Source of the DNA: Adineta vaga
Lineage: Eukaryota > Animalia > Rotifera
Reading direction: 5' to 3'
Assembly (NCBI GenBank): GCA_021613535.1
Contig: CP075497.1
Coordinates: 3,596,001 to 3,660,000, forward strand
Length of the DNA stretch: 64,000 nt
Every line of letters begins with the position of its first letter. Within the stretch, counting starts at the first letter, position 1. The position numbers and the translations under genes are program-made. Below, piece after piece: positions 2,751 through 43,417 of the stretch. Below the pieces are notes generated by a model. The model was given only the letters and a program-made list of their open reading frames with translations. It was not told the DNA's origin and did not search any database.

Positions 2751-5208
2751 TCAAAATCGAACTTTTTCTTTTAAAATTAAATCATGAATTTCTCGGGTTA
2801 ACTCTTCGTAACTTTGTTTTTGTTGATTTAAATAATAGATTGGTTCATTAATTCGATTCAGATCATAAGCTTCTTCTTGAAAGACAGTTTTTTTCACTTT
2901 AAATGTTCCAGTTAATTCAATATGTTTTGTTAAACGTATAAAACATGGACGAGCATACGAAGGTAAACCTTGTTTCTTCAATTCATTTGCTAATGTTGAC
3001 ATATCAATCGAAGACGTTAAATCATCAAGAATAACAGCCATTCCTGCTTTTCCTTCCGATTCTAAATCAAACGTAGATTAGATTTGATCATTATCTCGAG
3101 CAAAATTATAATCAAACCTGGTACAGAAACACCGAAAACAACAACATCATTTCGTTTAAGAATATTCATCAGAATATTTTCAACTTCTACAGTCGAAACA
3201 TTTTCCCCTTTCCATCGAAATGTATCACCCGTTCGATCACAAAAATAAAAATATCCATATTTATCTGCATAGATAACATCACCTATTTATATCAACAAGA
3301 AAATAATGATCATTTTCAATCTTATTCATTCTTACCGGTATTAAATGCTTTATCACCGATTTTATAAACATTCTCGATAATTTTTCGATTTGTACCTGAA
3401 GGATTATTTACATAACCATCAAATTCATTGAAGACACTTTTCTTAATCATTCCTATTAATAAACCACGTTCATCTGTTTTACATGGTATACATAGTTGAG
3501 TTTTTTCATCACGTAATGGTTCCATTGTTTCCGGATCAAATCGTACAAGTAAGGAGCCAAGAATTCTAGGAACAATAACAGAAAAAAATCCACAAGCACC
3601 GGGATGACAATCGATATTAACTAGAAAAATGAATCAATTTATATGAACTTAATTTTTTAATAAGAAATTCATTTACAAAAATAAGCATTGCTTTCAGTAG
3701 CACCATAGAATTCATAAATATTTCGTATATTAAATCGTTTGGAAAATGGTTTCCAAAGATTTTGTCGAAGACCATTACCCGAACAAAATTTTATGGAATG
3801 TTTTTGATCATATTCACTTGATGGTTGAGCAAGTAAAAAGCGACATAATTCTCCTACATAAGTAAAACCCTTTTGAATTAGAAAGCACAAGCAAATATTT
3901 AATAGAAATCCTGTTAAAATAGAACATACGGTACATTGATATTTAACACAATCTTTCCAAAAATTTGATGCAGAAAATTTTTTTCGTAATACAGTTGTAC
4001 ACCCACCGAGCAAACTAAATTATTAAACAGAAGTTGACAATCTTTTGTTGGATATTTATTTAAACATACCTATAGGTAATACAGACCCAACCACCTGTAA
4101 AAAGTTGATTTGATGTGACAACATGAAAAATGATTTCGAGAATAACTTACCGAGTGAATGGTAAAGTGGAAGTGTATTGTACATGATATCTTCAGGTTTG
4201 ATACCTGTTGCACAAAGAAAACCATATGAACCAAGAAGGAATCTAGAGGAAGAGTATTCAATTCATACAAAATCATACTTGAAAGTACGCTTGACAAACC
4301 GTGCATGTTTAATTACTGCTGCTTTAGGTAAACCTGTTGTACCAGAAGTGAATATATAAAAAACTGGATCTACGAAAAGAATAAATTAATATTTCGATGA
4401 AAGAGAATCAATCGATTGTTTGTTAGTATACATTTAAAATCACATGGAAGAGGATTAGGTGGTTGAATTGAACATACTTGCAATTGTTCATATAATTGAA
4501 TTGTTTCAAAAGATGTTGATATAGATTCGGAATTACTATTATGAATTTTCGTTGTTGATGATTCTTTTGGATCAAATAGATATACTTTTTTTATATCTAA
4601 TTCTTTCAATTCCGCTTCAATTTCTATTTGAAATTAAAAAAAAGTAATTTCGAAATTCTTTAAACAAAAATAATTCATCTTACCTGGAAGAATTTGTTTT
4701 GATGTAATGATACTTTTAGCATTAACTGTACGAATTGAATGTAGAAGTGGTTTTGCACGAAGATTGGTATTGATTAGAGCTGTTATACAACCAATTTTAC
4801 TCAATCCAATCCATACACATGGATATTCAAGTGAATTTTCAAGTACAAGTGCAATCACATCACCACGTGTAAAACCTTCCGCAGAAAAAAAATTCGCCAA
4901 TTGATTGGTTAAATCTTCAATCTAAATTTATGAAAAATAAAACAACAAAAAATATGTTTTTTCTTTCAACTAACTTGTTGAAATGAAAGTGATTTGTCTT
5001 CGAGGATAAAACATGGTTTTGTTTGATAGCGTTTGACATTTTCACGAAAAATATGTATAAAATCTCGTTTCCGAAATGTATTGTATTTGATTATAAGATG
5101 ATATTTAGTCAATACACATAAACCAGTAAGATCACGTGTTAAAGTTTTAATAACAATAAAGAAAAATTTCAATGTTTGTACAATGGAAGTCCAAATTCTA
5201 TCAAACAT
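2751..5208 (-). CDS. Long-chain fatty acid transport protein / acyl-CoA ligase (SLC27A1/4-like), multi-exon
   Basis: AMP-binding motif [39 protein letters not shown], and C-terminal [20 protein letters not shown]. Confidence 0.93.
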
Positions 5209-5762
5209 CTAGAATAATAAAGATTCTAATTGAATATATATTTTGCGATGTATACATATATGAGGGCAAGTCTATAAAGGTAAATAAGTGTACGCATGAC
5301 TATTACACAAAGTGACAGATTGAATGAAATTTTATTCGTCGATATTTTCATTAAGGAAAACGTTGTACTAGTAAGTCTTTATATAAGTTTTCATTTGAAT
5401 AAACAAATATATCTATAATACTATGATCATCTCTAAGTTCGTACTTAATTACTGAGAAAGAAAAGAAAAATTCTTTATTCTTCGAAAAAAAACAAGAGCA
5501 AAAGCAAAAAAGGACGTACGAAACGTATGCTGATGATATATTCAGGGTCAAAGTACAACCACACAGTTCGAACCTTTTTTTTTCAAAGTCGTAAAATACA
5601 GGCACAATGTGTGTTTAATATGTTTACAGAGAGAGTGAGAAAAACGAAACGAGAGAGAGAAAGAAAGAAAAACAGTATGATAATAATAATAGTAATAAGC
5701 AAAAGAGATAAGTTACACACAAAACATATAAAACACTGTTGTTAACGTATGATTTTCTTCAT

Positions 5763-8280
5763 CTAACAAACATAATCGCCAAAATCTCCTCGAAAATCAA
5801 TATCAATACGACAGATTGGACATCGTTTACTTTGAGTTAACCATCTATCCACACATTCAATATGAAATAGATGCATACATGGTAAACGACGAACATCATC
5901 ATTATGATCGAATTCACATAGACATATAGTACATTTTTCATCGGCTAATATCGTTCGTTTTTCATATTTATATGATAATGTTCGAGCATTAATATGTTCT
6001 TGATTTGCGCCTATATTACCACCATTATTTAAACCATTTAGCTGTTCTTCCATACGTAATAATTCTTCGACGACATGTTCAGCACGTTCACTATTTAGAA
6101 ACGGATGATGATGATGGTGATGATGATGACTACGTAGTAGAAGTGGATTACGAAATGGACGAAATAATAAAGGCGTCGATGGCCATTGATTATTTTGTGT
6201 TGTCGTATTTATTGCTACGTGCATACTCGGATTAGTTGTGCCTAATGTTAAATTATATGTATTCGCCGATGATGATGCTGCAGTTGCTGGTTGTATTGTT
6301 AAATGAGCATGAATATTATTGTTTGTTGTTGTTGCTGTTGGATGAGTTAGAATAGCATGTAATTGTTGATTAGCAGTGAGTATTGTAGTCGTAGGTGAAG
6401 AGGCAGAAGATAAAGTTTGATGTTGAAATGAACTAAGTCGTTGTCGACGCAATTCAGATGTTAATTGTTGACGATATTGATGACGTAAATGAGCAGGATT
6501 GTGATTATGATTATGATTGTGATTATGATTATGATGATGATGATGAAAATGAAGATGTTGAACGGGTGGAGGTTGCGGAAGAGAGGCAAGTGCAACTAAA
6601 CAAATTCATATTGGAAAATATTGATCTTTCCAATTCTAAAAACAAACAAAAAAACGAACTTACCGGCACTAGCAGCAGCAGCAGCTAGAGCAACAGTTTG
6701 TTGACTTGTTGCTGTTAAAGTTGGAATAGCATTAGGTGTTTGATTAGGAGGATAAACAATAAAAGGTGATATAGATGCAGTTGAAGATGAATTTGATCCG
6801 TTTGATGGAGTTATTACTGTAGAACTATTTGGTGTACGATGTGAACATGAACACGAAGAATTTGAAGGAATTGGTGTTGGTAAAGGATGTCTCCTGGAAG
6901 ATAAAAGTTGTCGAGGAAAGGTTGACGCTACTGTCGGAGTCGTTGACAATGTTTGTGATTGTTGTTGCTGTTGATTAGAATATAATGTAGGATAATAGGA
7001 AATCGATCTTGATTGTTGTTGTTGTTGCTGCTGCTGCTGCTGCTGTTGTTGTTGTTGTTGTTGTTGCTGTTGAATAGATCGAAAATGATTTGTATGAGCA
7101 GTTATATTTGATGGTAATAATGAATCTTGTTTTGTTTGATCAACAATAAGATTATTACTATTTGACAATAATGATGATGATGGTCTTTGACTAAATAGAG
7201 CACTTGATGAATCATCATCATCATCATCGTCATCGTCATCTTCATCATCATCTTCTTCATCACTATCGTCACTTGATTCGATACTTGTTGTTATTGTTGT
7301 TGTTTGTCGTCGTTGAGTATCCATTGCATTCGATTCATCATACAATGAAGCAGTAACAGCAGCAGCTATACAAGCTGCAGCAGTAGCACGTGATGACGCT
7401 AAATCATTTGTAGTTGTAGATGCTGATGAAAAAATTCGTCGAGCAGAATTACTAAATGTATCATTTTCATCATCATCTGACGAACATTCTTGAACTTGTA
7501 ATTGACGAGAAGATACTATATATACATAGAAAGAAAATGATTAATTTCTAGTTATTTACTCTTTCTTTTCTTTTATAAAATAATGTACCTGTGGATGACT
7601 GTATAGGACGAAAACGTTTCGGTAGACTACGACCATCATTAATTATTGAATTGGATGAAGAAAAATCATATTCATTTGATATAGAACGTCTTTTTCGATT
7701 ATTCGTAGATGCTGAAGATGCTATTGAATTCGATGTTGATGAATTATTACATAGATTTTCATAATAATTACGAATAAGTGTATTACTATTTGATACTATC
7801 GAAGCAGCTGTAGTGGCAGCAGTCGATTGTTGATCATTTGTAGGTAGAGATGAAGGCATTGTGGGATTAAATTTATCAAGTAAAGTTTTATATCGTGGTA
7901 AAGTTGTTGTTGCTGCTGCATTTGTCATTGTAGACGATGACGAAGTCGATGAAGAAGGTGAATCTAATATAATAAATAACATTTTTATTTCTTTCAAAAT
8001 GAAGAAAAATCAGATTTTTACCACTGTATGTATGCGTAGTAACGGTATAAGGTGTTGGAGGTCGACTATTTCTGGATAAATCATTATTATTATGCGTAGT
8101 TCCATTAGTAAGAAAATCATTTAATGTCGTTTGATTAACATTTTGTTGATGATGAATAAGAAGAGCAGCGGCTGCAGCAGCTGGTTCAACAGCAAGAAAT
8201 TCAGCAAATGCAGCATTCATTGCGGATGCGACTTCTTCAGGACTAACAATCGATGATTGATGTTGTTGTACGGCACTCAT
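5763..8280 (-). CDS. RING-H2 E3 ubiquitin ligase, Arkadia family (RNF111/RNF165-like), with a long low-complexity N-terminus
   Basis: C-terminal [10 protein letters not shown]...[19 protein letters not shown]...[47 protein letters not shown] matches the Arkadia RING region. PolyQ, polyD, polyA and polyH tracts lie upstream. Short introns near 8020, 7530-7585 and 6600-6660. Confidence 0.85.
7012..7070 (-). repeat. CAA/CAG polyglutamine tract in the RING E3 gene
   Basis: (ttg/ctg)n on the + strand encodes about 20 Q in ORF 6596..7345. Confidence 0.9.
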
Positions 8281-32855: not shown

Positions 32856-35800
32856 TCACTTCAGATTTGCAAACATTTTTACTAATAAATCAAATGAATG
32901 ATAATCATTTGTTGTATCATTAACACAACCAAGTGATTGTAATTTTCTTCGTATACATGCATTTAATTTCGTTCGTAATTTCAATAAATTATTATCTGAT
33001 ATAATCAATTGATAATCATTCAATTTCATTGTTTCATTCATTGGTCCAAAGAATAAAAGAATAAATTCATCGACGATCGTACAACATTTTGCAAGAAATA
33101 AACCTTTATTCGAACGGATTAAATCATCACAAATAGCAAAATGAATGTTTTCTCCGTTCAATTGCGTGTTATTTAAGACAGATGTGAGGTCAAGTTGAAC
33201 TAATTCATTTCGACTAAGAAAAGAAAAAGAATTTTTGTTATCATTTCTAATGCTCTTACTTTGATAACCATTTTTGTTCGTAAGTAATTAAATTTTGTGG
33301 TAAACAATGAACAATTATTGCTTGAATCAATAGCCAACATGTAGCATTGACATTTAAATCAATATTATCGTGATTATTTGAATAGAAAAATTTGGAAAAC
33401 TTGATATTAATCAGAAAATTACTCAACCATTTTCTATGAAAATCACCTAGATTGTATAATTACTTGAAAGAACAAAATAGATTCTTACTGAAATCGATCA
33501 ATTTGTTTCATTCGAAAATATTTCACATTCCAATTCAAACAAAATTGTTTTTTATCAAGTGATTGTTCCCATTGCTAAAAAACAGATTGACATTTACGTA
33601 TTTATTATACAAAGAACTCTACAATTCGTACTTGATATAATTGATAAAAGATGAAATGATCAGAATTTTGATTCAATGCTAAACGTTGTTTTAATTCTAA
33701 TAAATGTTGAATATTTGTTATTGATTGAACTATGAAAATGAAAGAAGAAAATTTTTAGTCTGATTTAAAATTATTGATAAAAATATACAATGAACTCTTT
33801 TTTCGAGGTCGTATTTGTCACGGTTTATCATGGGTCATGATCATCATGTCTGTTACGCTTTTCTTACCGAAACATAACTGAAAGAAATGCGTTCTTTCTC
33901 TATTCAAAATTGCTTGTTAGCAAATGATATATTCTTTTTATTTCATTACTAATTAATGATCGATTATTTCGAGTAATTTACACTTGAGATTATATTGATT
34001 TTATCTAGTTACTATGATATATCCGTATGAAAGGTCATCAATGTGAATCTAGAAAAAATCCTCGAGTTTTTTTTTTACTTACAAGGATCGCCAATGATCA
34101 GTGTAGAAATAATGATTAAAATGGGTTGTAAACATTTGAATAGATGACCATAAACGATCATCATTGCATAGGGTAATTCAACAACCGGTAAAGCTAAACA
34201 ATAAGCTCCTAAATCGACGAGATCTTCCCATTTATCAAAGAGATCAAGATTCTACAAAGAAATGAGCAGTTGAATAAAAATAAATAAATTAATGAAGATT
34301 AGATTTCTTTACTTTCAATTGAGAAATACCAGCACGAACAACTGCGAATGGTGGAGGAAATGGTAATTTCAACATAAACTCTGCTACTGAACAATTTGTC
34401 CATGCAAATAATTTCGCTTGCATGATATTTTCCTAAATTAATGTACAAAACGAAGAAGGAATTATTTAACAGTAAATAAAAGCAGATCTTTCAAAACTTA
34501 CAAGTAATGGTTGTCGAGCCATTTCCGCATTGACATTTTCATTGATTTTCTCGTCGAATAACGATTGAGGATAAAGTCGATAACAAACACCACCTTCTCC
34601 AATATTTGCTCTACAAAAACGAATTCAAATGGAATTTCTTGTAAATCAAACAAACTACATATATATTCCATATCTTACCGATGTTTTCTTTCAGTCGCAC
34701 TTGTTTGATTTATCCAGTTATATTTTGGTAACAATTTCGACGTAGTTGTATGATAGCATCTCTAAAATACTCTTATAGATCCAATCCATCTTTCAGCTAA
34801 CTTACCTCAAGATTGATACCTGTATCAATAACACAACGAATATTACAAAAAGGTACACCTGTTTCACCGCTCGCATCACAAAGAATCTAGAAGAAGGTAA
34901 TTATAAACTTAATAGAATAGATAAAAATAGATTTACCAATAATCGTGAAGAATGATTGTTCATTAATAGCCATGATGATGAATTCAAAATCATATGAATT
35001 TCAATTCCAAATCTATATATCACGATATTCCAACTAGTTGTTTGCTTTCGTAATCAAACTTACTCTTTCGAAATGTTTGAATTTGAACAAATATCATTCA
35101 TTATTGATATTTCATCTATTCCTGGTAAAAATACGAGTATATGTCCTATAAGAAACTAACATTGATGAAAAAGATTTTCTATAAATATATCCTTCTACTT
35201 ACCCGAACATATTTGACATATGTATTTAACAACTGCTAAGATTAATTGATAATCAATAACATCATTAAACTTTCGTGTTTGTAAATAATATTTCATTAAT
35301 GCTATCATTGGTGTAACATTTGAATTATTATTTGTTAAACTCAATAATTGTTCCAAAAGAAGAGAATCCTGCCTATAAATAATCGAATATTTAAAAATTA
35401 CATTTGATTTTTAAGAGAATTAAAAATAAAAAAACTATTTCATGCAGATTAATCAGTAAATTTTTTTCCTCATATAAACATGCATATCCCATTAATCGAT
35501 GTACTCTCTCTCCCTTCTCGAGCAGTTTGATAAGCTAATCATGCGAATGAACTATTTTTTAACGAAATTTTATTCTTACCGTCCAAATCCTATATTAACT
35601 GTTGATAAAATACATATATGTATTTAATAACAAACATAAATGTAAATCTACACTTACGTTGTATATGATTCAAGTAAATCGATGGTTTCATGAGTTGCAT
35701 ATTTTCGTGCAAAATCAACGGCAGAAAAGTTATTTACAGCACGAAGATTAAAGAACAAACTATTGTTTGATAATAAATGTTCAATCGATAATTTAATACT

Positions 35801-38039
35801 CCACATCGACAAACACATCAATGGACTAACAAGTGTTAATGGATGTTGATGATTACCTTAAAAAGAAATATATCTACATAGAATGATTAGAAAACATTTG
35901 ACTGCATAATCGTTTAACATAGTAGAACTTCGATAATTTAGAAAGATATCATGGTTGTCTATCATTCTAACGGTGTCGATGTCTGCAAACGAGTTTAATT
36001 TCTTCTTGATTCTTACATTTGTCTGGATATTGATTAATAAAATTCATCAATAATTGAATATCTTCAATGAATCCATTCACAAAACATCGTCCAATTAACT
36101 CATTCAAATAACGTTCAGCTGGTATCATATTTTGTTCCTAAAAATATCAATGTATGAAAAATAAAAAAACAGAAAAGATTCATACTAATAATGAATAGAT
36201 ATTTTGACATGAGTCACATATGATTGATGGAGAAGTTTTATGATGAATTGAAGATTGTTCTGCTAAACGACACCAATACTCTAATAATTGCATTCCATAA
36301 GTATCTAAAACGAAAACCTCTAGAAATCGAAGTAATCATAGAAAAAAAGAGTTTTTTACTAATTGATAAACATTTATTTGGATCTATTCGTTGAATATCG
36401 ATTAGAATTTTTTCCAGAAATATTTCATCAATCTTTTCATTCATTATTTCATTTGTATCAACTATAAATAATAAATGATAATAACAATCATTTTCAATTC
36501 AAAAGAAAATAACATTTCATACTTGTATATGTTGCAACATTTCCAAAATATTTCACTAATGTATCATATTGTATTGTTGTTTGAAGAAAAATCATTTTCA
36601 AATATCGAAATTTATGTTGAGTATCTTTCAAATATGCTAAGATCATGTCAAGTGTATGAGATCGTTTATGAACATCATCAATAATCAAATGTGTTACAGA
36701 GGATTTCAGTAAATAATCACCACAAATTAACGTACGTAAAAGAAGTTCATGCGTTGTAATCGTAATCAATGATGTTATATCATTAGTTGATGACCTAGGT
36801 AATCAGAAAAGAGTTATAAAACGAAATTTCATTTGTTTTTACATATTATCAAAAGTAAGACAATCGCTTGATGGAATAAATGATGATAATGCATAGGCAG
36901 ATAAACTTGTCGTACAACTATGAAGAATTCGAATAGGCCATTGTTTATCAAAATGATCATCATTTAAATATTGACAAATCTAATAATAGAAACAAAAATG
37001 AATGTTATAATATAAAGATATAAACTTACTCGAATAGATTTTCCAATTGCAGGTGGACCACTAATAAAAATCATTTTATTATCTAAATAAATGAGGATGT
37101 TTAATGACGATTAAAATCAATTGATTCTTATCTACTTTCAATCAGATGAAGAAGATTATCTCGTGTTGATGTTTTATCAATTGGCAAGAATTGAATGGAA
37201 TGTTCTGGAGAAATAAATCGTTGATCAGGTATTCGTGGTTTAATATCCGATGATTTAAATAACGAATTACCCGATCGTAATAATGTACAATAAAACCAAT
37301 CTAAAAGAAAAATTCTTTGATCATGAATTCGAAAATGATTTCATTTACCATTGAGAGAACTTGGTGTCTTTTGAATTTTAGCTTGTAGAAAATCATTATC
37401 ATCCGTTGAGATTGGACATGATTGAATATATGTATGAATTTCGTCTGTTAATTGAGGATTAGTCAATGATATTTGTAATTGTTTTGATGAATTAGTCACA
37501 TTGTTTAAAACAGATTCATTCGTTGATTTCGAAACAGCAATAATACGTGATGCACCACGTCTAAAGATAATTTGTAATTTTGGATTTGAATAGAAATTCT
37601 TTTTACCCTAAAGTTCGACAGATAAGATTCCGTTGTTGTGCTTGTTGACGAACAAATATTCGTTCATGACAAAATAATGATGATGGAAATTCAATTTCTC
37701 CATTTGTTTTTCCTTCATTTAGATAATCATCAAGCATTTGACAAATAACTTGTCGAACAGGATTTAAAACATCCAAATTCTACGTACGAAACAAGACAAA
37801 ATATTTATCTCAACAACGAAATATCACGAAATTTACATATCCAACAGGTATTTCTGAATCCGATTCATCATCACTTAAATAATCAATCATTGAATCTACA
37901 TTTGTATTATTCATTCGATACGATACATTCGATACAAACTTTAAAAAAAACAACATTTTTTCACTCTTTCAATCCTACACAAACATACTTGATCATCGTC
38001 TCCACCTGTTGAATATGTTTCATAATCATTCGGTTTCAT
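32856..38039 (-). CDS. YTHDC2/Bgcn-like DExH helicase (R3H, RecA1, ankyrin insert, RecA2, HA2) with degenerate motifs and no YTH domain
   Basis: R3H-like EFPSSLFCHERIFVRQQAQ..LICRTLG; GPPAIGKS; LLRTLICGDYLLKSSVTHLIIDDVHKR; ankyrin-like YQHPLTLVSPLMCLS..NFSAVDFA; ILVFLPGIDEI; CVIDTG; WINQTSATERKHR; HA2-region LDLFDKWEDLVDLG...FKCLQPILII...DPF. Confidence 0.8.
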
Positions 38040-38185
38040 CGAAAATGTTTTTCGATGATATTGTGGATGCATATCTAGAATAAGAACAATCTTTTTACAA
38101 TGTTGACTAGCATATTTATTGATTTTATAGAAGAAATAAAGTTTTATCTGACATAAAGAGAAAAGAAAAAAAATAGAAGAAGATT

Positions 38186-39020
38186 TTATTCAGTTGACAT
38201 GATCTTGTTCATTTGAAATGCATCGGTCACATACATGGAAATTTCATCTTCAATTGATCTCTGAAATAAAACATATTTTGAAGAAAATAATGAATGCATA
38301 TCGATTGATCTTACAAGTTCATCTCGAACACTTTCGACTTTTAATGTCAAACTATCAATTGTCTAAATGAAATATAGAATAAGAATAGTTGATTAATATT
38401 TAAATAGATAGTTACTGGTTCATCACAAGGCATCCAATGTGCCATTTGTTGTTGAAGAATTTCATATTCACATCGTGTATTTTCAACATCCTGAATAAAG
38501 GTGATTGATTTTTCTTTAGATTAGTTTATTCAAATGAATACTTTTTGTAATTTTTCAATATCAGTATATGTAACTGATGGTTTAGCATTGATATCAAATG
38601 ATTGTAATTTATTTTCAATGAATTTCATTTCTGCCATTGTGGTCATTCGTGTTGATTCATATTCATCGAATTTTTCATTTTGTATATTCACAATTTTCTG
38701 TTGTTTTCTAAATAAATCGAAGGGTAAGAACTTTTGTAATCATCTTTCAATATGATTTACTCATTTAACACTTTAGCTAGATTAGAAATTTCAAGATAAT
38801 TTTGTTGAATTGTTGGTAGAATAACATCGAATGTATCCAAACGATTCTGTGTTGTAGAAGAAATATTTTGTAATTTACGTAATTTGGTTAAAAAGATTTC
38901 TCCATGATCAATATGTGATGAATCAATTTCTAATAATCGTCCGATATTATTCAATAATTGTAGATTTGAAAGTAATTGATCGGAATTAAATGATGATGAT
39001 GATGATTCAGATTGAGGCAT
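38186..39020 (-). CDS. HAUS1 (augmin subunit 1)-like coiled-coil protein, 5 exons
   Basis: The spliced product ends MKFIENKLQSF..PSVTYTDIEKLQKDVENTRCEYEILQQQMAHWMPCDEPTIDSLTLKVESVRDELRSIEDEIS. This parallels the HAUS1 C-terminus (MDFLKAK..SLSHQSL..LKKKLESYLDL.P.PSLA.VKIEEAKREL..IEAEL). Aligned by eye only. Confidence 0.55.
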
Positions 39021-39231
39021 CTGAAGATAAAAATCATGTTTGTTTACATTTTATTTCTTTATTTTGAAATTCATTAAATAAAAACGATTGATAGGTTTTT
39101 TTTAGACAAAGACAAATAAAACACAAAATTCACAGAAATATAGATTGTATAACACGAGATTCGAAATTAGAAGAAGTTGCATTGTATCTGAACATGTATG
39201 CCTCAAGAATAGAAGTTTTTCGACGAAATAC

Positions 39232-41078
39232 TTATGCATACGAACCATTTGCCAAGAAACGTAATACATCAACAAGAAGATACGGTCTGAAATAAATGAC
39301 GATATTATCAATAATATCTTCTACTATGAAACTTACTGTGTTCGTTCTAATTGTTTCCATTGTTCGGTTGCAAATACTTCTTTACTATATGTTTTGATAA
39401 ATACAAGTAAATTATCTTTTAATAATTTTGAATTATAAATATTCGCTCGTACAAGCATTTCTGCTGCTGTTTCATATGTAAATGTATCGATTAATGATTC
39501 TATACATAAATGTTTTAAATTTTCAATAACATATTTATCTGCTGCATATAAAAGATCTAATGCATGAATATCTAAATGTTTAATTTCATTATAATAAATA
39601 AATCGAAGCATTTCTTCACAAATATCTTCGGATATATCATTTATTTCAATTGTATTTAAACGTGTTTCTAACATATCAGATAAAAACATTCGTTCAAACA
39701 CTTCACTTGCTAATGAAAGTATACAACGATGAACATTAAATTCTTTAAAACCAACTTTAATTTTGATATCTGAAAATTTTCCTGTATGAAATAATTCTTT
39801 TGTTAAAGAAGAATTTTGTTTGAAATTCTTAGAAGAAACATTTTCATCTAAGATATTTAAACATAATTTTGAAGTATCTTGTTGTCCATAGAGTACAATT
39901 CGTGCAAAGAAAACCAAACATGGACTAGAATTATATTGTTGTGTACAATCACTTAATTCTTTACTAGTAAATGGATCAAATTTGTATTCATCAATTGGAT
40001 CAAGTATATCACTTATTTTTAATAAACGTGTGGAGAAATTTGCACGAACGAAAAATTCTATACGAAATTTATATGGAATATGTTTTTTCATACGTAAACT
40101 TAGATGATATAACATTAAAATCATATTTTGTTCACGTTCAAGTGTTAAAGATAATTGAAAACAATTACTTAAATGAACATAATGACGATCTAATTTATGT
40201 TCAAAGGTAAAGATTGAACTTTCTAAACATTCATCTTCGTAACATAACTAAAAATAAAATTAACGATTGAAAATTTTTATCGATTGAAAATTAAAAGAAA
40301 TACTTTAGTTTTGGTATTAAAATCATCAATAATCCATTGATATGTAAATGATGGTTCATCAATTGTTGTGTTACCATTTCGAACTTTAATTAAACGTAAA
40401 TCATCACATCCTGATGCATCACACATAGGACGAATTTGTAAAGTTATTGTTAATGATGGACATGATAATAAACGATCACGTGATGATGAAATATATGATT
40501 TTAAAAAATTTGATATAACATAATTGCCTATGATGATGAAAAAGAATAAAAGAAGTTTTTCTTGAAAATTATTTACGTTTTATATCAAATGATTCACTCG
40601 GATCACAATAAAAACTTGCATTTGACCATGTATATTTATAGATTTCTTCGCCATTATATTCACATGTGACAATAACTTCTGCTTTAATTGTTCGTAATTT
40701 TGGCTATGAAAGAAAAAAAATGAGAAAATTATTTTGTCTAATAAACTTCAAATTTCTTACTGTTATCATAAACACATAAAATTTCACAAAAATACTGTTA
40801 CGTTCACAATACGATGGATATAAACGCATGATCCAACTAGAAAAGCGAAGCAAATCAAATTTTAAGGAAATTTAATATTCACATCTTTGTTACCTTGTTG
40901 AACAATTTGTACATGGAAATAATTCACTTGTATATTCATCACCATCACGACTATGTTGAACATTTTTTATTAACCAATTATGTTTGATTTCCACTAATGG
41001 TTCAGCTATCGATGCTTGTTGTGAAGGTCGTATTGCATTATTCGTGTCACTTGTCATTGAAGGTGATCCAGCGGACAT
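39232..41078 (-). CDS. MATH-BTB-BACK protein (SPOP/TDPOZ-like Cullin-3 adaptor), apparently with two MATH-like units
   Basis: BTB: FSDIKIKVGFKEFNVHRCILSLASEVFERMF...LLYAADKYVIENLK. SPOP-like end: WKQLERTQPYLLVDVLRFLA (last exon after a short intron; TAA at 39232). MATH-like starts HNWLIKNV...SELF...WIMRLYP and YQWIIDDF...SSIFTF. Confidence 0.85.
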
Positions 41079-41483
41079 ATTATCTTTTTTTGCTCTAGAT
41101 CATTGAAACATTGATGGCAATCGATTGATACAGACAAGTAAAAAGTTTTAACTTTTCTCTATGAATGCTTGTTCCTAGAGACGCGTTCGTTCTTTTCTTC
41201 TTCTTCTTCTTCTTCTTTTTCTTTCTTTTTTTTATTTCTTTTTCAGTCTTTAAAAGAAGAACAATATTGATTGGTTAATAAATATAACAAATGAAAAATT
41301 GTTCATGTACCTTTCTGACAGCTGATATTCAGTTCTTCATTGGCGGAAAGATTAGTATTACATATAATTGTCAAATTTCCTATAAAAGAAAGAGAAAAAC
41401 AAATAAGTGGACATATATATAACGTTCACACATTCGATTCTTAGTTCTATTCTTTATTCGTTCGTTTCGTCTAGTGATATAAA

Positions 41484-42740
41484 ATGCCAGTACAACGTGG
41501 TCTTGCCAAAGAATGTCAGCAATATTTTCAAACATCTAATCTCTATGAGATATTTTCTGTTCAACGAACAGCAACTGAGGCACAGAGTAGGATCTAATTA
41601 ACGAAATAATGAATATGAGTTTTTAGTTTTTCTTGTTTAGTTAAAAAGGCCTATCGTCAATTAGCTCTTCGTTATCATCCAGATCGTACAGATATCGATC
41701 AGAAAGAAGAGGCTAAAATAAAATTTCAAATCATTGGAAAAGTTTATACTATTCTTTCTGATGAAGAAAAACGAAAAATTTACGATGATACCGGTAAGTT
41801 AAAAAAAAAGTCTTTCTCTTATTCACTGTCTACATCATAATCATTTCTAGGTGCAATGGATGACGATGATTTAACAATGGGTGTCAATGATTGGTATGAC
41901 TATTGTAAAAAGATGTTTCGAAAGGTGACAAAGAATGATTTGATTGAATTTGAAAACAAATATAAAGGTAAATAGTGAAATGAAGAACGTCATTTCTTCA
42001 AATTTATATTTTCATAGGTTCTGATGAAGAAAGAAAAGATTTGAAACGGATTTATCTTGAAGTAGTTGGTGATATGGATCAAATTTTTGAAAGACATCTT
42101 CTAACATGTCTCGAAGATGAAGATCGTTTACGTACGATGATTGATCAAATGATTGAAGATAATGAAGTACCAGCATTTGATGCTTATACAAAAGAAACAA
42201 AGGCAAAACGAAACAAACGTCATAAAAAGGTAGAGAAATTCGATTTTCATTTGTTTTGTTAATCTAAATAAATCTTTTTCAAATATATAGTTAACCAAAG
42301 AAGCAGCAGAAGCTGAAAAATTAATGAAAGAACTCAATATTGGAAGTGATACTGAAAGTCTTGAACGTGCAATACAAATGCGTCAACAACAACGTGCTGG
42401 TACGAGTTTTTATGATCAACTTTTAGAAAAATATGGTTCAAAAACAAGTAATGGAAATAAAAAACGAGGATCAAGTTCATTAAATAATAATAAATCGAAG
42501 AAAACTTCGGTGAATAATCATGGTAAACGTACAGCGAAAACTGATGATGAAGAAGAAGATGATCATGATGACGACGATAATGATGAAGATATTGATAATG
42601 ATGATGATACAAGTGAAACATTAACTGACGATGAAGATAAGAAACCAAAACGACGTAATTTATCGAAAAAGCATGGAACAACTATGAAGAAAACTCGTCG
42701 TCCTGCAGCTGGACATAAAAAGCGCAAGATCTCACATTAA
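41484..42740 (+). CDS. DNAJC9: DnaJ homolog subfamily C member 9
   Basis: J-domain with HPD (KKAYRQLALRYHPDR), YFQTSNLYE, DWYDYCKKMF, YKGSDEERKDL, EAAEAE, FYDQLLEKYG, then an acidic and basic tail. Confidence 0.9.
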
Positions 42741-42899: not shown

Positions 42900-43417
42900 T
42901 CATGAATAAATAGATATAAGTAAGAAAATGCAAACAAGATACATTTTCTTATTTCTTGGTATTGCCAGTAGTTGTGTGTTTAAACGTTGAATAATATCAT
43001 CAGCTTCAAAACGATTTATTACGATTAAATGATTGATTTCTTTTGTATTTTCATTCAGACATGCAACATAAAGATGACCAGTCGTTGGAATTTGAATTTG
43101 TGCTCGACGAATTCCACGATAAATATCATTCGTTGCAGGAAGAATTCCTTCTCCAATCTATTTCGAAACGAAAGATTCTATCAATAATCATCATAACAAT
43201 GAATATTTACTTGAGAATAATCAAAATCAATCATTGTATCATAGACACGTCCACGTAAAGTACGCATATCATTATGATCAAATTGAATACTATAATGATC
43301 GCGTGGTGGCATTGTAGCTGACGAAATTCCACGTTGAACAGACGTTATTTTACTAATAAATGCAATTGAAGATTTTGAAATATGTTCAAGAGCTTTATCC
43401 TTGCCATGTAGTACCAT
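42900..43417 (-). CDS. Uncharacterised small protein (about 155 aa, 2 coding exons) with a hydrophobic C-terminus
   Basis: MVLHGKDKALEHI...DFDYSQ splices through a short GT-AG intron (about 43159-43210) to IGEGILPATND...IPRNKKMYLVCIFLLISIYS-TGA. Confidence 0.55.

Follow-up and report, generated by a model that had tools for sequence, protein, structure and literature searches.

The question raised by this locus is whether bdelloid rotifers organize genes into operons that are resolved by spliced-leader (SL) trans-splicing. We analysed the interval C6:3596001-3660000 of the Adineta vaga genome (an assembly of 100.8 Mb in six contigs), a stretch of 64,000 nucleotides that we call the window, and in it a run of three minus-strand genes, here gene 1 (SPOP-like), gene 2 (coiled-coil) and gene 3 (helicase-like). 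Rotifers have been known to use SL trans-splicing for some twenty years. Both junctions between the genes carry a polyadenylation (poly(A)) signal shortly before an AG that abuts, or nearly abuts, the next start codon. We consider it reasonably probable that the three genes are one transcription unit, an SL operon of the tunicate or Caenorhabditis elegans SL1 type.

Anatomy of the two junctions

The genes, their coding sequences (CDS) and the elements of the two junctions, including the 3′ untranslated region (UTR) of gene 1, are as follows.

39232..41078, minus: gene 1 CDS, SPOP-like MATH-BTB-BACK protein of 525 aa; introns from spliced RNA contigs, frame open
41078-40894, 40836-40761, 40703-40576, 40526-40304, 40247-39337, 39286-39232, minus: gene 1 exons
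39021..39231, minus: junction 1, the 211-nt spacer between gene 1 stop and gene 2 ATG, mostly gene 1 3′ UTR
39063-39058 and 39055-39050, minus: two AATAAA hexamers, upstream of the AG end by 37 and 29 nt
39021..39037, minus: pyrimidine tract and AG (39022/39021), TTTTTATCTTCAG, abutting the ATG at 39020; candidate SL acceptor of gene 2
38186..39020, minus: gene 2 CDS, coiled-coil protein of 207 aa; four introns seen as joints in three RNA runs, frame open
39020-38761, 38707-38541, 38489-38416, 38362-38315, 38260-38186, minus: gene 2 exons
38073..38185, minus: junction 2, the 113-nt spacer between gene 2 stop and gene 3 ATG
38120-38115, minus: AATAAA of gene 2, upstream of the AG end by 40 nt
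38075..38090, minus: pyrimidine tract and AG (38076/38075), TTCTTATTCTAG, then AT, then the ATG at 38072; candidate SL acceptor of gene 3
32856..38072, minus: gene 3 CDS, many-exon DEAH-family helicase-like protein; stop TGA at 32858-32856, exons within 36200-37779 from RNA contigs

Gene 1 ends with a TAA at 39234-39232 and gene 2 with a TAA at 38188-38186, both on the minus strand. The original prediction, made from the DNA letters alone, had placed the hexamers and acceptors at these same positions, and all of its motif coordinates were borne out on the minus strand at both junctions. Its 211-nt gap at junction 1 also stands, but the 146 nt that it gave for junction 2 is corrected to 113 nt. 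We place the start of gene 3 at the ATG at 38072 rather than at 38039 because an in-frame ATG lies 2 nt past the AG and the string TTCTAG-AT-ATG-C is kept in other bdelloids. Both acceptors combine a pyrimidine tract with an AG 0-2 nt before the ATG, with no possible cis donor partner within the 113-211-nt spacer. The predicted near-coincidence of poly(A) signal and acceptor holds at both junctions, with the hexamers 29-40 nt before the AGs and the layout conserved in relatives. A convergent plus-strand open reading frame (ORF) follows gene 3, and the cluster thus comprises exactly three genes.

Contigs from four sequencing runs (X1, X5, X10 and X8) were placed on positions 36200-41600 of the window, with short contig pieces left unplaced. 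We treat X1, X5 and X10 as RNA because they contain spliced contigs, and X8 as DNA. Within this interval, the cis introns of the three genes are 48-61 nt long and are confirmed by spliced contigs of X1, X5 and X10: five in gene 1, four in gene 2 and, for gene 3, those inside 36200-37600.

The X8 DNA differs from the reference by length polymorphisms in A/T runs (A8 vs A12; +AA) and by single nucleotide polymorphisms (SNPs), at 39096-39103, 38164-38165, 38877, 38913 and 41054. Three of these differences, the 38164/38165 indel and the SNPs at positions 38877 and 41054, coincide with breaks in the RNA contigs, and a site at 39177 probably does so too. Heterozygous sites in a clonal diploid are expected to behave in this way.

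Conservation of the arrangement in other bdelloids

A word search with the first exon of gene 2, followed by look-up of the encoding contigs, recovered seven further bdelloid genomic loci. One is from Rotaria sp. Silwood1 (L009), four are from environmental assemblies (L010, L011, L036 and L037), one is a DNA contig from a Logan run (L039), and the most distant, with 39% identity in gene 2, is from GCA_905249995.1 (L032). Conservation of gene order in other rotifers had been proposed as a check, and the order DNAJC9(-), gene 1, gene 2, gene 3 is kept at every locus long enough to display it (L010, L011, L032 and L036), with parts of it in the other three.

The layout of the junctions is kept as well. 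The AG lies 0-2 nt before the downstream ATG in all 12 tabulated junctions and in L039, and it sits directly on the gene 2 ATG in 8 of 8 genomes. Before gene 3, TTCTAG-AT-ATG recurs in L010, L011 and L037. A poly(A) signal of the form A[AT]TAAA was found 20-58 nt before the AG in nine of the 12 tabulated junctions, 70 nt before it in one more and 27 nt before it in L039; at junction 1 specifically, the distance is 25-33 nt in L011, L009, L037 and L039. Stop-to-ATG spacers measure 211, 90, 221, 247, 95, 180 and about 200 nt at junction 1 (about 865 nt in L032) and 113, 67, 84, 98 and 89 nt at junction 2 (418 nt in L032), a range of 67-247 nt in seven genomes. That this layout recurs in eight bdelloid genomes goes far beyond what chance would give and shows that the arrangement is under selection. 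L032 shows that the tight packing is not universal among bdelloids.

The 3′ UTR of gene 1 itself contains conserved sequence. The 9-mer GTTCAGATA is located at 39185-39193 (minus), 38 nt past the gene 1 stop, and its core TTCAGATA does not vary among the orthologous 3′ UTRs seen. In every orthologue seen, TTCAGATA (mostly as GTTCAGATA) occurs 7-45 nt past the gene 1 stop (L010 ~6922-6930, L011 ~5421-5429, L009 ~6791-6799, L036 ~3913-3920, L039 ~1610-1618, and the RNA contigs L033, 909-917, and L034, ~1662-1669). Adineta and Rotaria share longer blocks in this UTR, AACTTCTATT and GAATCTCGTGT..TATACAATCTAT..TTGTGAATT, and a similar GTCAGATA occurs in the gene 2 3′ UTR of the window (~38152-38145, minus), L011 and L036. 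We found no conserved RNA fold or Rfam family in the junctions, and GTTCAGATA was not enriched in a 264-kb sample of the genome (7 occurrences vs 5 for the reversed control). In Rotaria sp. Silwood1 (L009 5080-6699), gene 1 has a final intron of ~1.6 kb, vs 50 nt in the window, and the junction to gene 2 is still compact there at 247 nt.

RNA evidence at the junctions

In a related species, the RNA contig L033 (SRR5248462) extends from the 3′ part of gene 1 through the whole 180-nt spacer and includes the gene 2 ORF in full. It lacks the last gene 1 intron and all four gene 2 introns, which are present in the matching genomic contig L037, and it ends 13 nt before the AG of gene 3. That it stops before the gene 3 acceptor instead of running on argues against genomic DNA as the source of this bridge.

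Other contigs end at or near the acceptors. The last letters of L034 (SRR22100214) are ...TTTCAG; in the close relative L036, exactly this AG stands before the gene 2 ATG. In the window, the gene 2 contig X5:8 ends at 38092, 23 nt past the AATAAA and with 15 nt between its end and the AG. Taking contig ends as proxies for poly(A) sites, the distance from poly(A) site to acceptor is thus short: 15 nt for gene 2 of the window, 13 nt for L033/L037 and 0 nt for L034/L036. The gene 1 3′ UTR of the window is expressed, as X5:9 is unspliced from 39286 to 39096 and X1 and X10 reach 39178. On the other side of junction 2, record lengths and bin depths place the starts of the gene 3 contigs at 38041 (X10) and 38053 (X1), with none reaching upstream.

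The 5′ end of gene 1

Upstream of gene 1 lie three further features.

41079..41217, minus: gene 1 5′ UTR, collinear with the genome, no SL, running into (GAA)n; RNA contig X10:7
41218..41412, no strand: likely bidirectional promoter of gene 1 and DNAJC9, bounded by RNA contigs
41484..42740, plus: divergent DNAJC9, with HTH_DNAJC9 at 42041-42259 (3e-19)

The contig X10:7 covers 40894-41184 plus 33 further letters in the (GAA)n repeat that were skipped by the mapping. The full-length gene 1 orthologue on L034 has a 66-nt 5′ UTR that is likewise not SL. In both species, therefore, the first gene of the cluster has its own non-SL 5′ end. The DNAJC9 contig X1:4 begins at 41413 or earlier and the one of gene 1 extends to ~41217, so the space for a promoter is at most ~196 bp. 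The non-SL 5′ UTR and the HTH_DNAJC9 match back the earlier claim that gene 1 has a divergent 5′ region of its own facing DNAJC9.

The simple repeat (GAA)n spans 41185-41247, inside the transcribed 5′ UTR of gene 1 and adjoining the presumed bidirectional promoter. A second tight junction seemed to follow DNAJC9 (ATG at 43061); we rejected it, as by eye this stretch is minus-strand coding and belongs to a convergent gene.

Spliced-leader RNA genes

We searched the genome with what we take to be the bdelloid spliced leader, which ends in ...ACTTACCAAGAG, and obtained 59 places at ≤2 mismatches vs 0 for the reversed control. In an inspected copy the leader is followed by a GT donor (CCAAGAG, then GTAAAT). 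The genome thus has SL RNA genes, in keeping with the starting assumption of a bdelloid with SL trans-splicing, and they form one family with minor variants. The genes mostly occur as head-to-head pairs ~154 bp apart, clustered mainly on contig C5 (for example C5:9884356-9925969 and C5:10912931-10934587; L001 1500-1680). The leader has two variants, ..TTACAAC.. and ..TTAAAAC.., and a pair often contains one of each.

A proposed single transcription unit and its alternatives

In the reading that we favour, RNA polymerase II would start at a compact bidirectional promoter common with DNAJC9, presumably the only promoter of the cluster, and genes 1, 2 and 3 would be transcribed as one precursor of ~8.4 kb. 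At each junction the upstream message would be cleaved and polyadenylated after A[AT]TAAA, ~0-16 nt from the AG acceptor, and the AG (39021 and 38075 in the window) would receive the 22-23-nt bdelloid SL 0-2 nt before the next start codon. The products would be three capped monocistronic mRNAs. The branch point for trans-splicing is probably upstream of, or at, the cleavage site; we infer from this that cleavage and trans-splicing would be coupled or competing.

The original prediction had likewise proposed a polycistronic unit of the SL1 type. This is consistent with the anatomy and the way it is conserved, with a gene 1 5′ end that is not SL, with the RNA across junction 1 in a relative and with the contig ends 0-16 nt from the acceptors; SL joining and the co-transcription of gene 3 are, for now, presumed parts of it.

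Several results weigh against a single unit. Neither at 39021 nor at 38075 was a joined SL seen; coverage by the A. vaga RNA contigs is interrupted at 38915-39095 and 38054-38091, so that they speak neither for nor against SL addition. Exact look-ups with the first 35 and 47 residues of gene 2 returned no 5′-terminal RNA contig, and a scan of JGI metagenome contigs for the SL joined to gene 2 (CTTACCAAGAG+ATGCCTNNNTCTGA) gave no match; the same kind of scan for the 3′ end of L034 gave none either. In none of the data sets does an RNA contig span junction 2. A contig over two genes is not proof of a single molecule, and outron RNA from an internal promoter would bridge junction 1 too. The 865- and 418-nt spacers of L032 leave room for separate promoters. 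Genome-wide, the pattern AATAAA-N(15-40)-TTYAGATG occurs 834 times, vs 807 for N(75-100), both about twice the reversed control; this crude count reveals no coupling across the genome but is uninformative because internal intron acceptors dominate the pattern, and the 264-kb sample held too few candidate starts for a spacing test.

The most serious alternative, which we nevertheless regard as unlikely, is that the cluster consists of three separate, tightly packed units. The promoters of genes 2 and 3 would then lie inside the upstream 3′ UTR or last exons, the SL would trim a short outron, and the proximity would reflect genome compaction. The wide spacers of L032 and the lack of RNA across junction 2 fit this, reads of outron-bearing precursors would also yield a bridge like L033, and the blocks of junction 1 conserved between Adineta and Rotaria could be promoter elements. 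However, these blocks sit in the expressed 3′ UTR of gene 1, and species whose spacers are 90-95 nt long lack them but have the same AG-ATG layout. The 67-113-nt spacers of junction 2 are filled by 3′ UTR, poly(A) signal and acceptor, leaving no free DNA, and gene order is kept down to the relative with 39% identity in gene 2.

A mature bicistronic mRNA of genes 1 and 2, formed when a weak gene 1 poly(A) site is read through and translated with no SL by re-initiation or internal entry, appears quite improbable. L033 has such a form, with a spliced 3′ part of gene 1, an intact spacer and a spliced gene 2 ending near its poly(A) signal, and the gene 1 signal in that species is the variant ATTAAA. 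Under this explanation, however, the conserved pyrimidine-tract AG abutting the ATG would have no role, and the gene 1 contig L034 stops at the AG with no run-on. Re-initiation in eukaryotic translation is unlikely after an upstream ORF of 525 codons, which also counts against it. Moreover, an SL branch of 22-23 nt would be lost from view through tip clipping during assembly, and L033 is thus no evidence against SL forms.

The original prediction had offered a further possibility, that the GT after the gene 1 stop (TAA followed by gtattt, at 39231/39230 in the window genome) is cis-spliced to the AG at 39021 to give a TAA-ATG bicistronic mRNA, and this we reject as having practically no chance of being correct: X5:9 is unspliced through 39231 to 39096 and X1 and X10 read to 39178, the pair after the stop is CA, AT, AT, AC, TG and CT in L010, L011, L009, L036, L037 and L039, so that the GT is not conserved, and L033 retains the whole spacer.

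Comparison with known operons and significance

A single transcription unit at this locus would most resemble the operons of tunicates and the SL1-type operons of C. elegans. The median intercistronic distance is 1 bp in Ciona intestinalis and about 31-33 bp in Oikopleura dioica, and C. elegans has rare SL1-dependent operons without an intercistronic region (PMC7986045). Tunicates use one SL for monocistronic and operonic genes, and the upstream gene is often not trans-spliced; in the cluster described here, contig ends lie 0-16 nt from the acceptor. The differences are that the phylum is Rotifera, that precursor and SL addition are putative, and that one distant bdelloid has 418-865-nt spacers. 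As in the SL1-type operons, the upstream poly(A) site would adjoin the trans-splice site, so that both reactions would use almost the same nucleotides, whereas nematodes also have a specialized SL2 and here we find one SL family with minor variants.

In SL2-type operons of C. elegans the intercistronic region has a median of 99-105 bp (PMC7986045). The cluster shares with them co-oriented unrelated genes and, as a single unit, would also share one upstream promoter and the combination of 3′-end formation and trans-splicing. In place of the ~100 nt and the dedicated SL2 of that class, it has at most ~16 nt, judged by contig ends, and one SL family, and so does not belong to it.

The nearest animal group with documented SL operons is the chaetognaths, which also belong to Gnathifera (PMC12460157; PMC2481426). 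In chaetognaths, 18% of genes are in operons (defined by an SL and a distance of <250 bp between genes), none of the SLs is specific to operons, and the origins of trans-splicing and operons in animal lineages are treated as independent in that study, which holds no rotifer operon data (PMC12460157). The SL sequences of chaetognaths and bdelloids differ. A 2021 methods paper states that operons are not reported in rotifers, and our search of the literature found no paper reporting them.

A single locus does not prove that bdelloids have operons. On balance we lean, if only slightly, towards the wider view that bdelloids have genuine tunicate-type SL operons, that this locus has been kept since before the split of Adineta and Rotaria, and that poly(A) site and acceptor share 0-16 nt with the two reactions coupled or competing. 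If this is true, Rotifera joins the phyla with operons. An operon that is conserved and backed by RNA would tie SL trans-splicing more firmly to the evolution of operons and would add a second gnathiferan lineage beside the chaetognaths. Gene models, promoter assignments and expression studies of horizontally acquired genes in bdelloids would need to account for operons. Because poly(A) site and acceptor nearly coincide, experiments could test directly in which order cleavage and trans-splicing occur and how they are coupled.

Products of the three genes

Pfam scans of the window genes were run exon by exon, an insensitive mode, and exons were concatenated only for the local frame check. Gene 1 had been labelled MATH-BTB. 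A BTB match was obtained in single exons (4e-23), and the full-length orthologue P0058 from Rotaria matches BACK_BPM_SPOP (28.5 bits, cutoff 27.4) and aligns over residues 194-525 with residues 32-358 of human SPOP, the MATH region included. The label thus stands for the BTB and SPOP-type BACK domains and, through the SPOP alignment, spans the MATH region, but Pfam MATH had no match in the gene 1 exons or in P0058.

Gene 2 had been called HAUS1-like. Sequence-level searches with gene 2 and full-length orthologues in Pfam, PDB sequences, a PDB profile search and Atlas gave no similarity to HAUS1, and with every sequence and profile search negative we regard the label as unsupported; in Pfam, gene 2 matched no family at all. 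The functional link drawn earlier between a Cul3 adaptor, a spindle factor and a germline RNA regulator rests partly on that name. Among 1.8 billion proteins, the first exon of gene 2 matched three representatives, and those that could be traced came from bdelloid-like contigs. Its relatives are on bdelloid-type contigs only, many of them from environmental metagenomes including activated sludge, and by sequence the family is found only in bdelloids. Gene 2 is single-copy in the haploid assembly, and the cluster has no ohnologous second copy.

Gene 3 had been described as YTHDC2-like. Its single exons matched HA2_C (4e-4, at the cutoff) and OB_NTP_bind (1e-6, 28.9 bits vs a cutoff of 29.5), which agrees with the HA2 and OB fold of DEAH-type helicases; the YTH part and the helicase core found no counterpart, as YTH, DEAD and Helicase_C matched none of the open gene 3 segments in this insensitive exon-wise scan. 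By eye, the segment at 36660-37070 (minus) contains a motif I of GPPAIGKS and a motif II of DDVH, vs the usual GxxGxGKT and DEAH, and these alterations suggest that gene 3 may encode an inactive ATPase.

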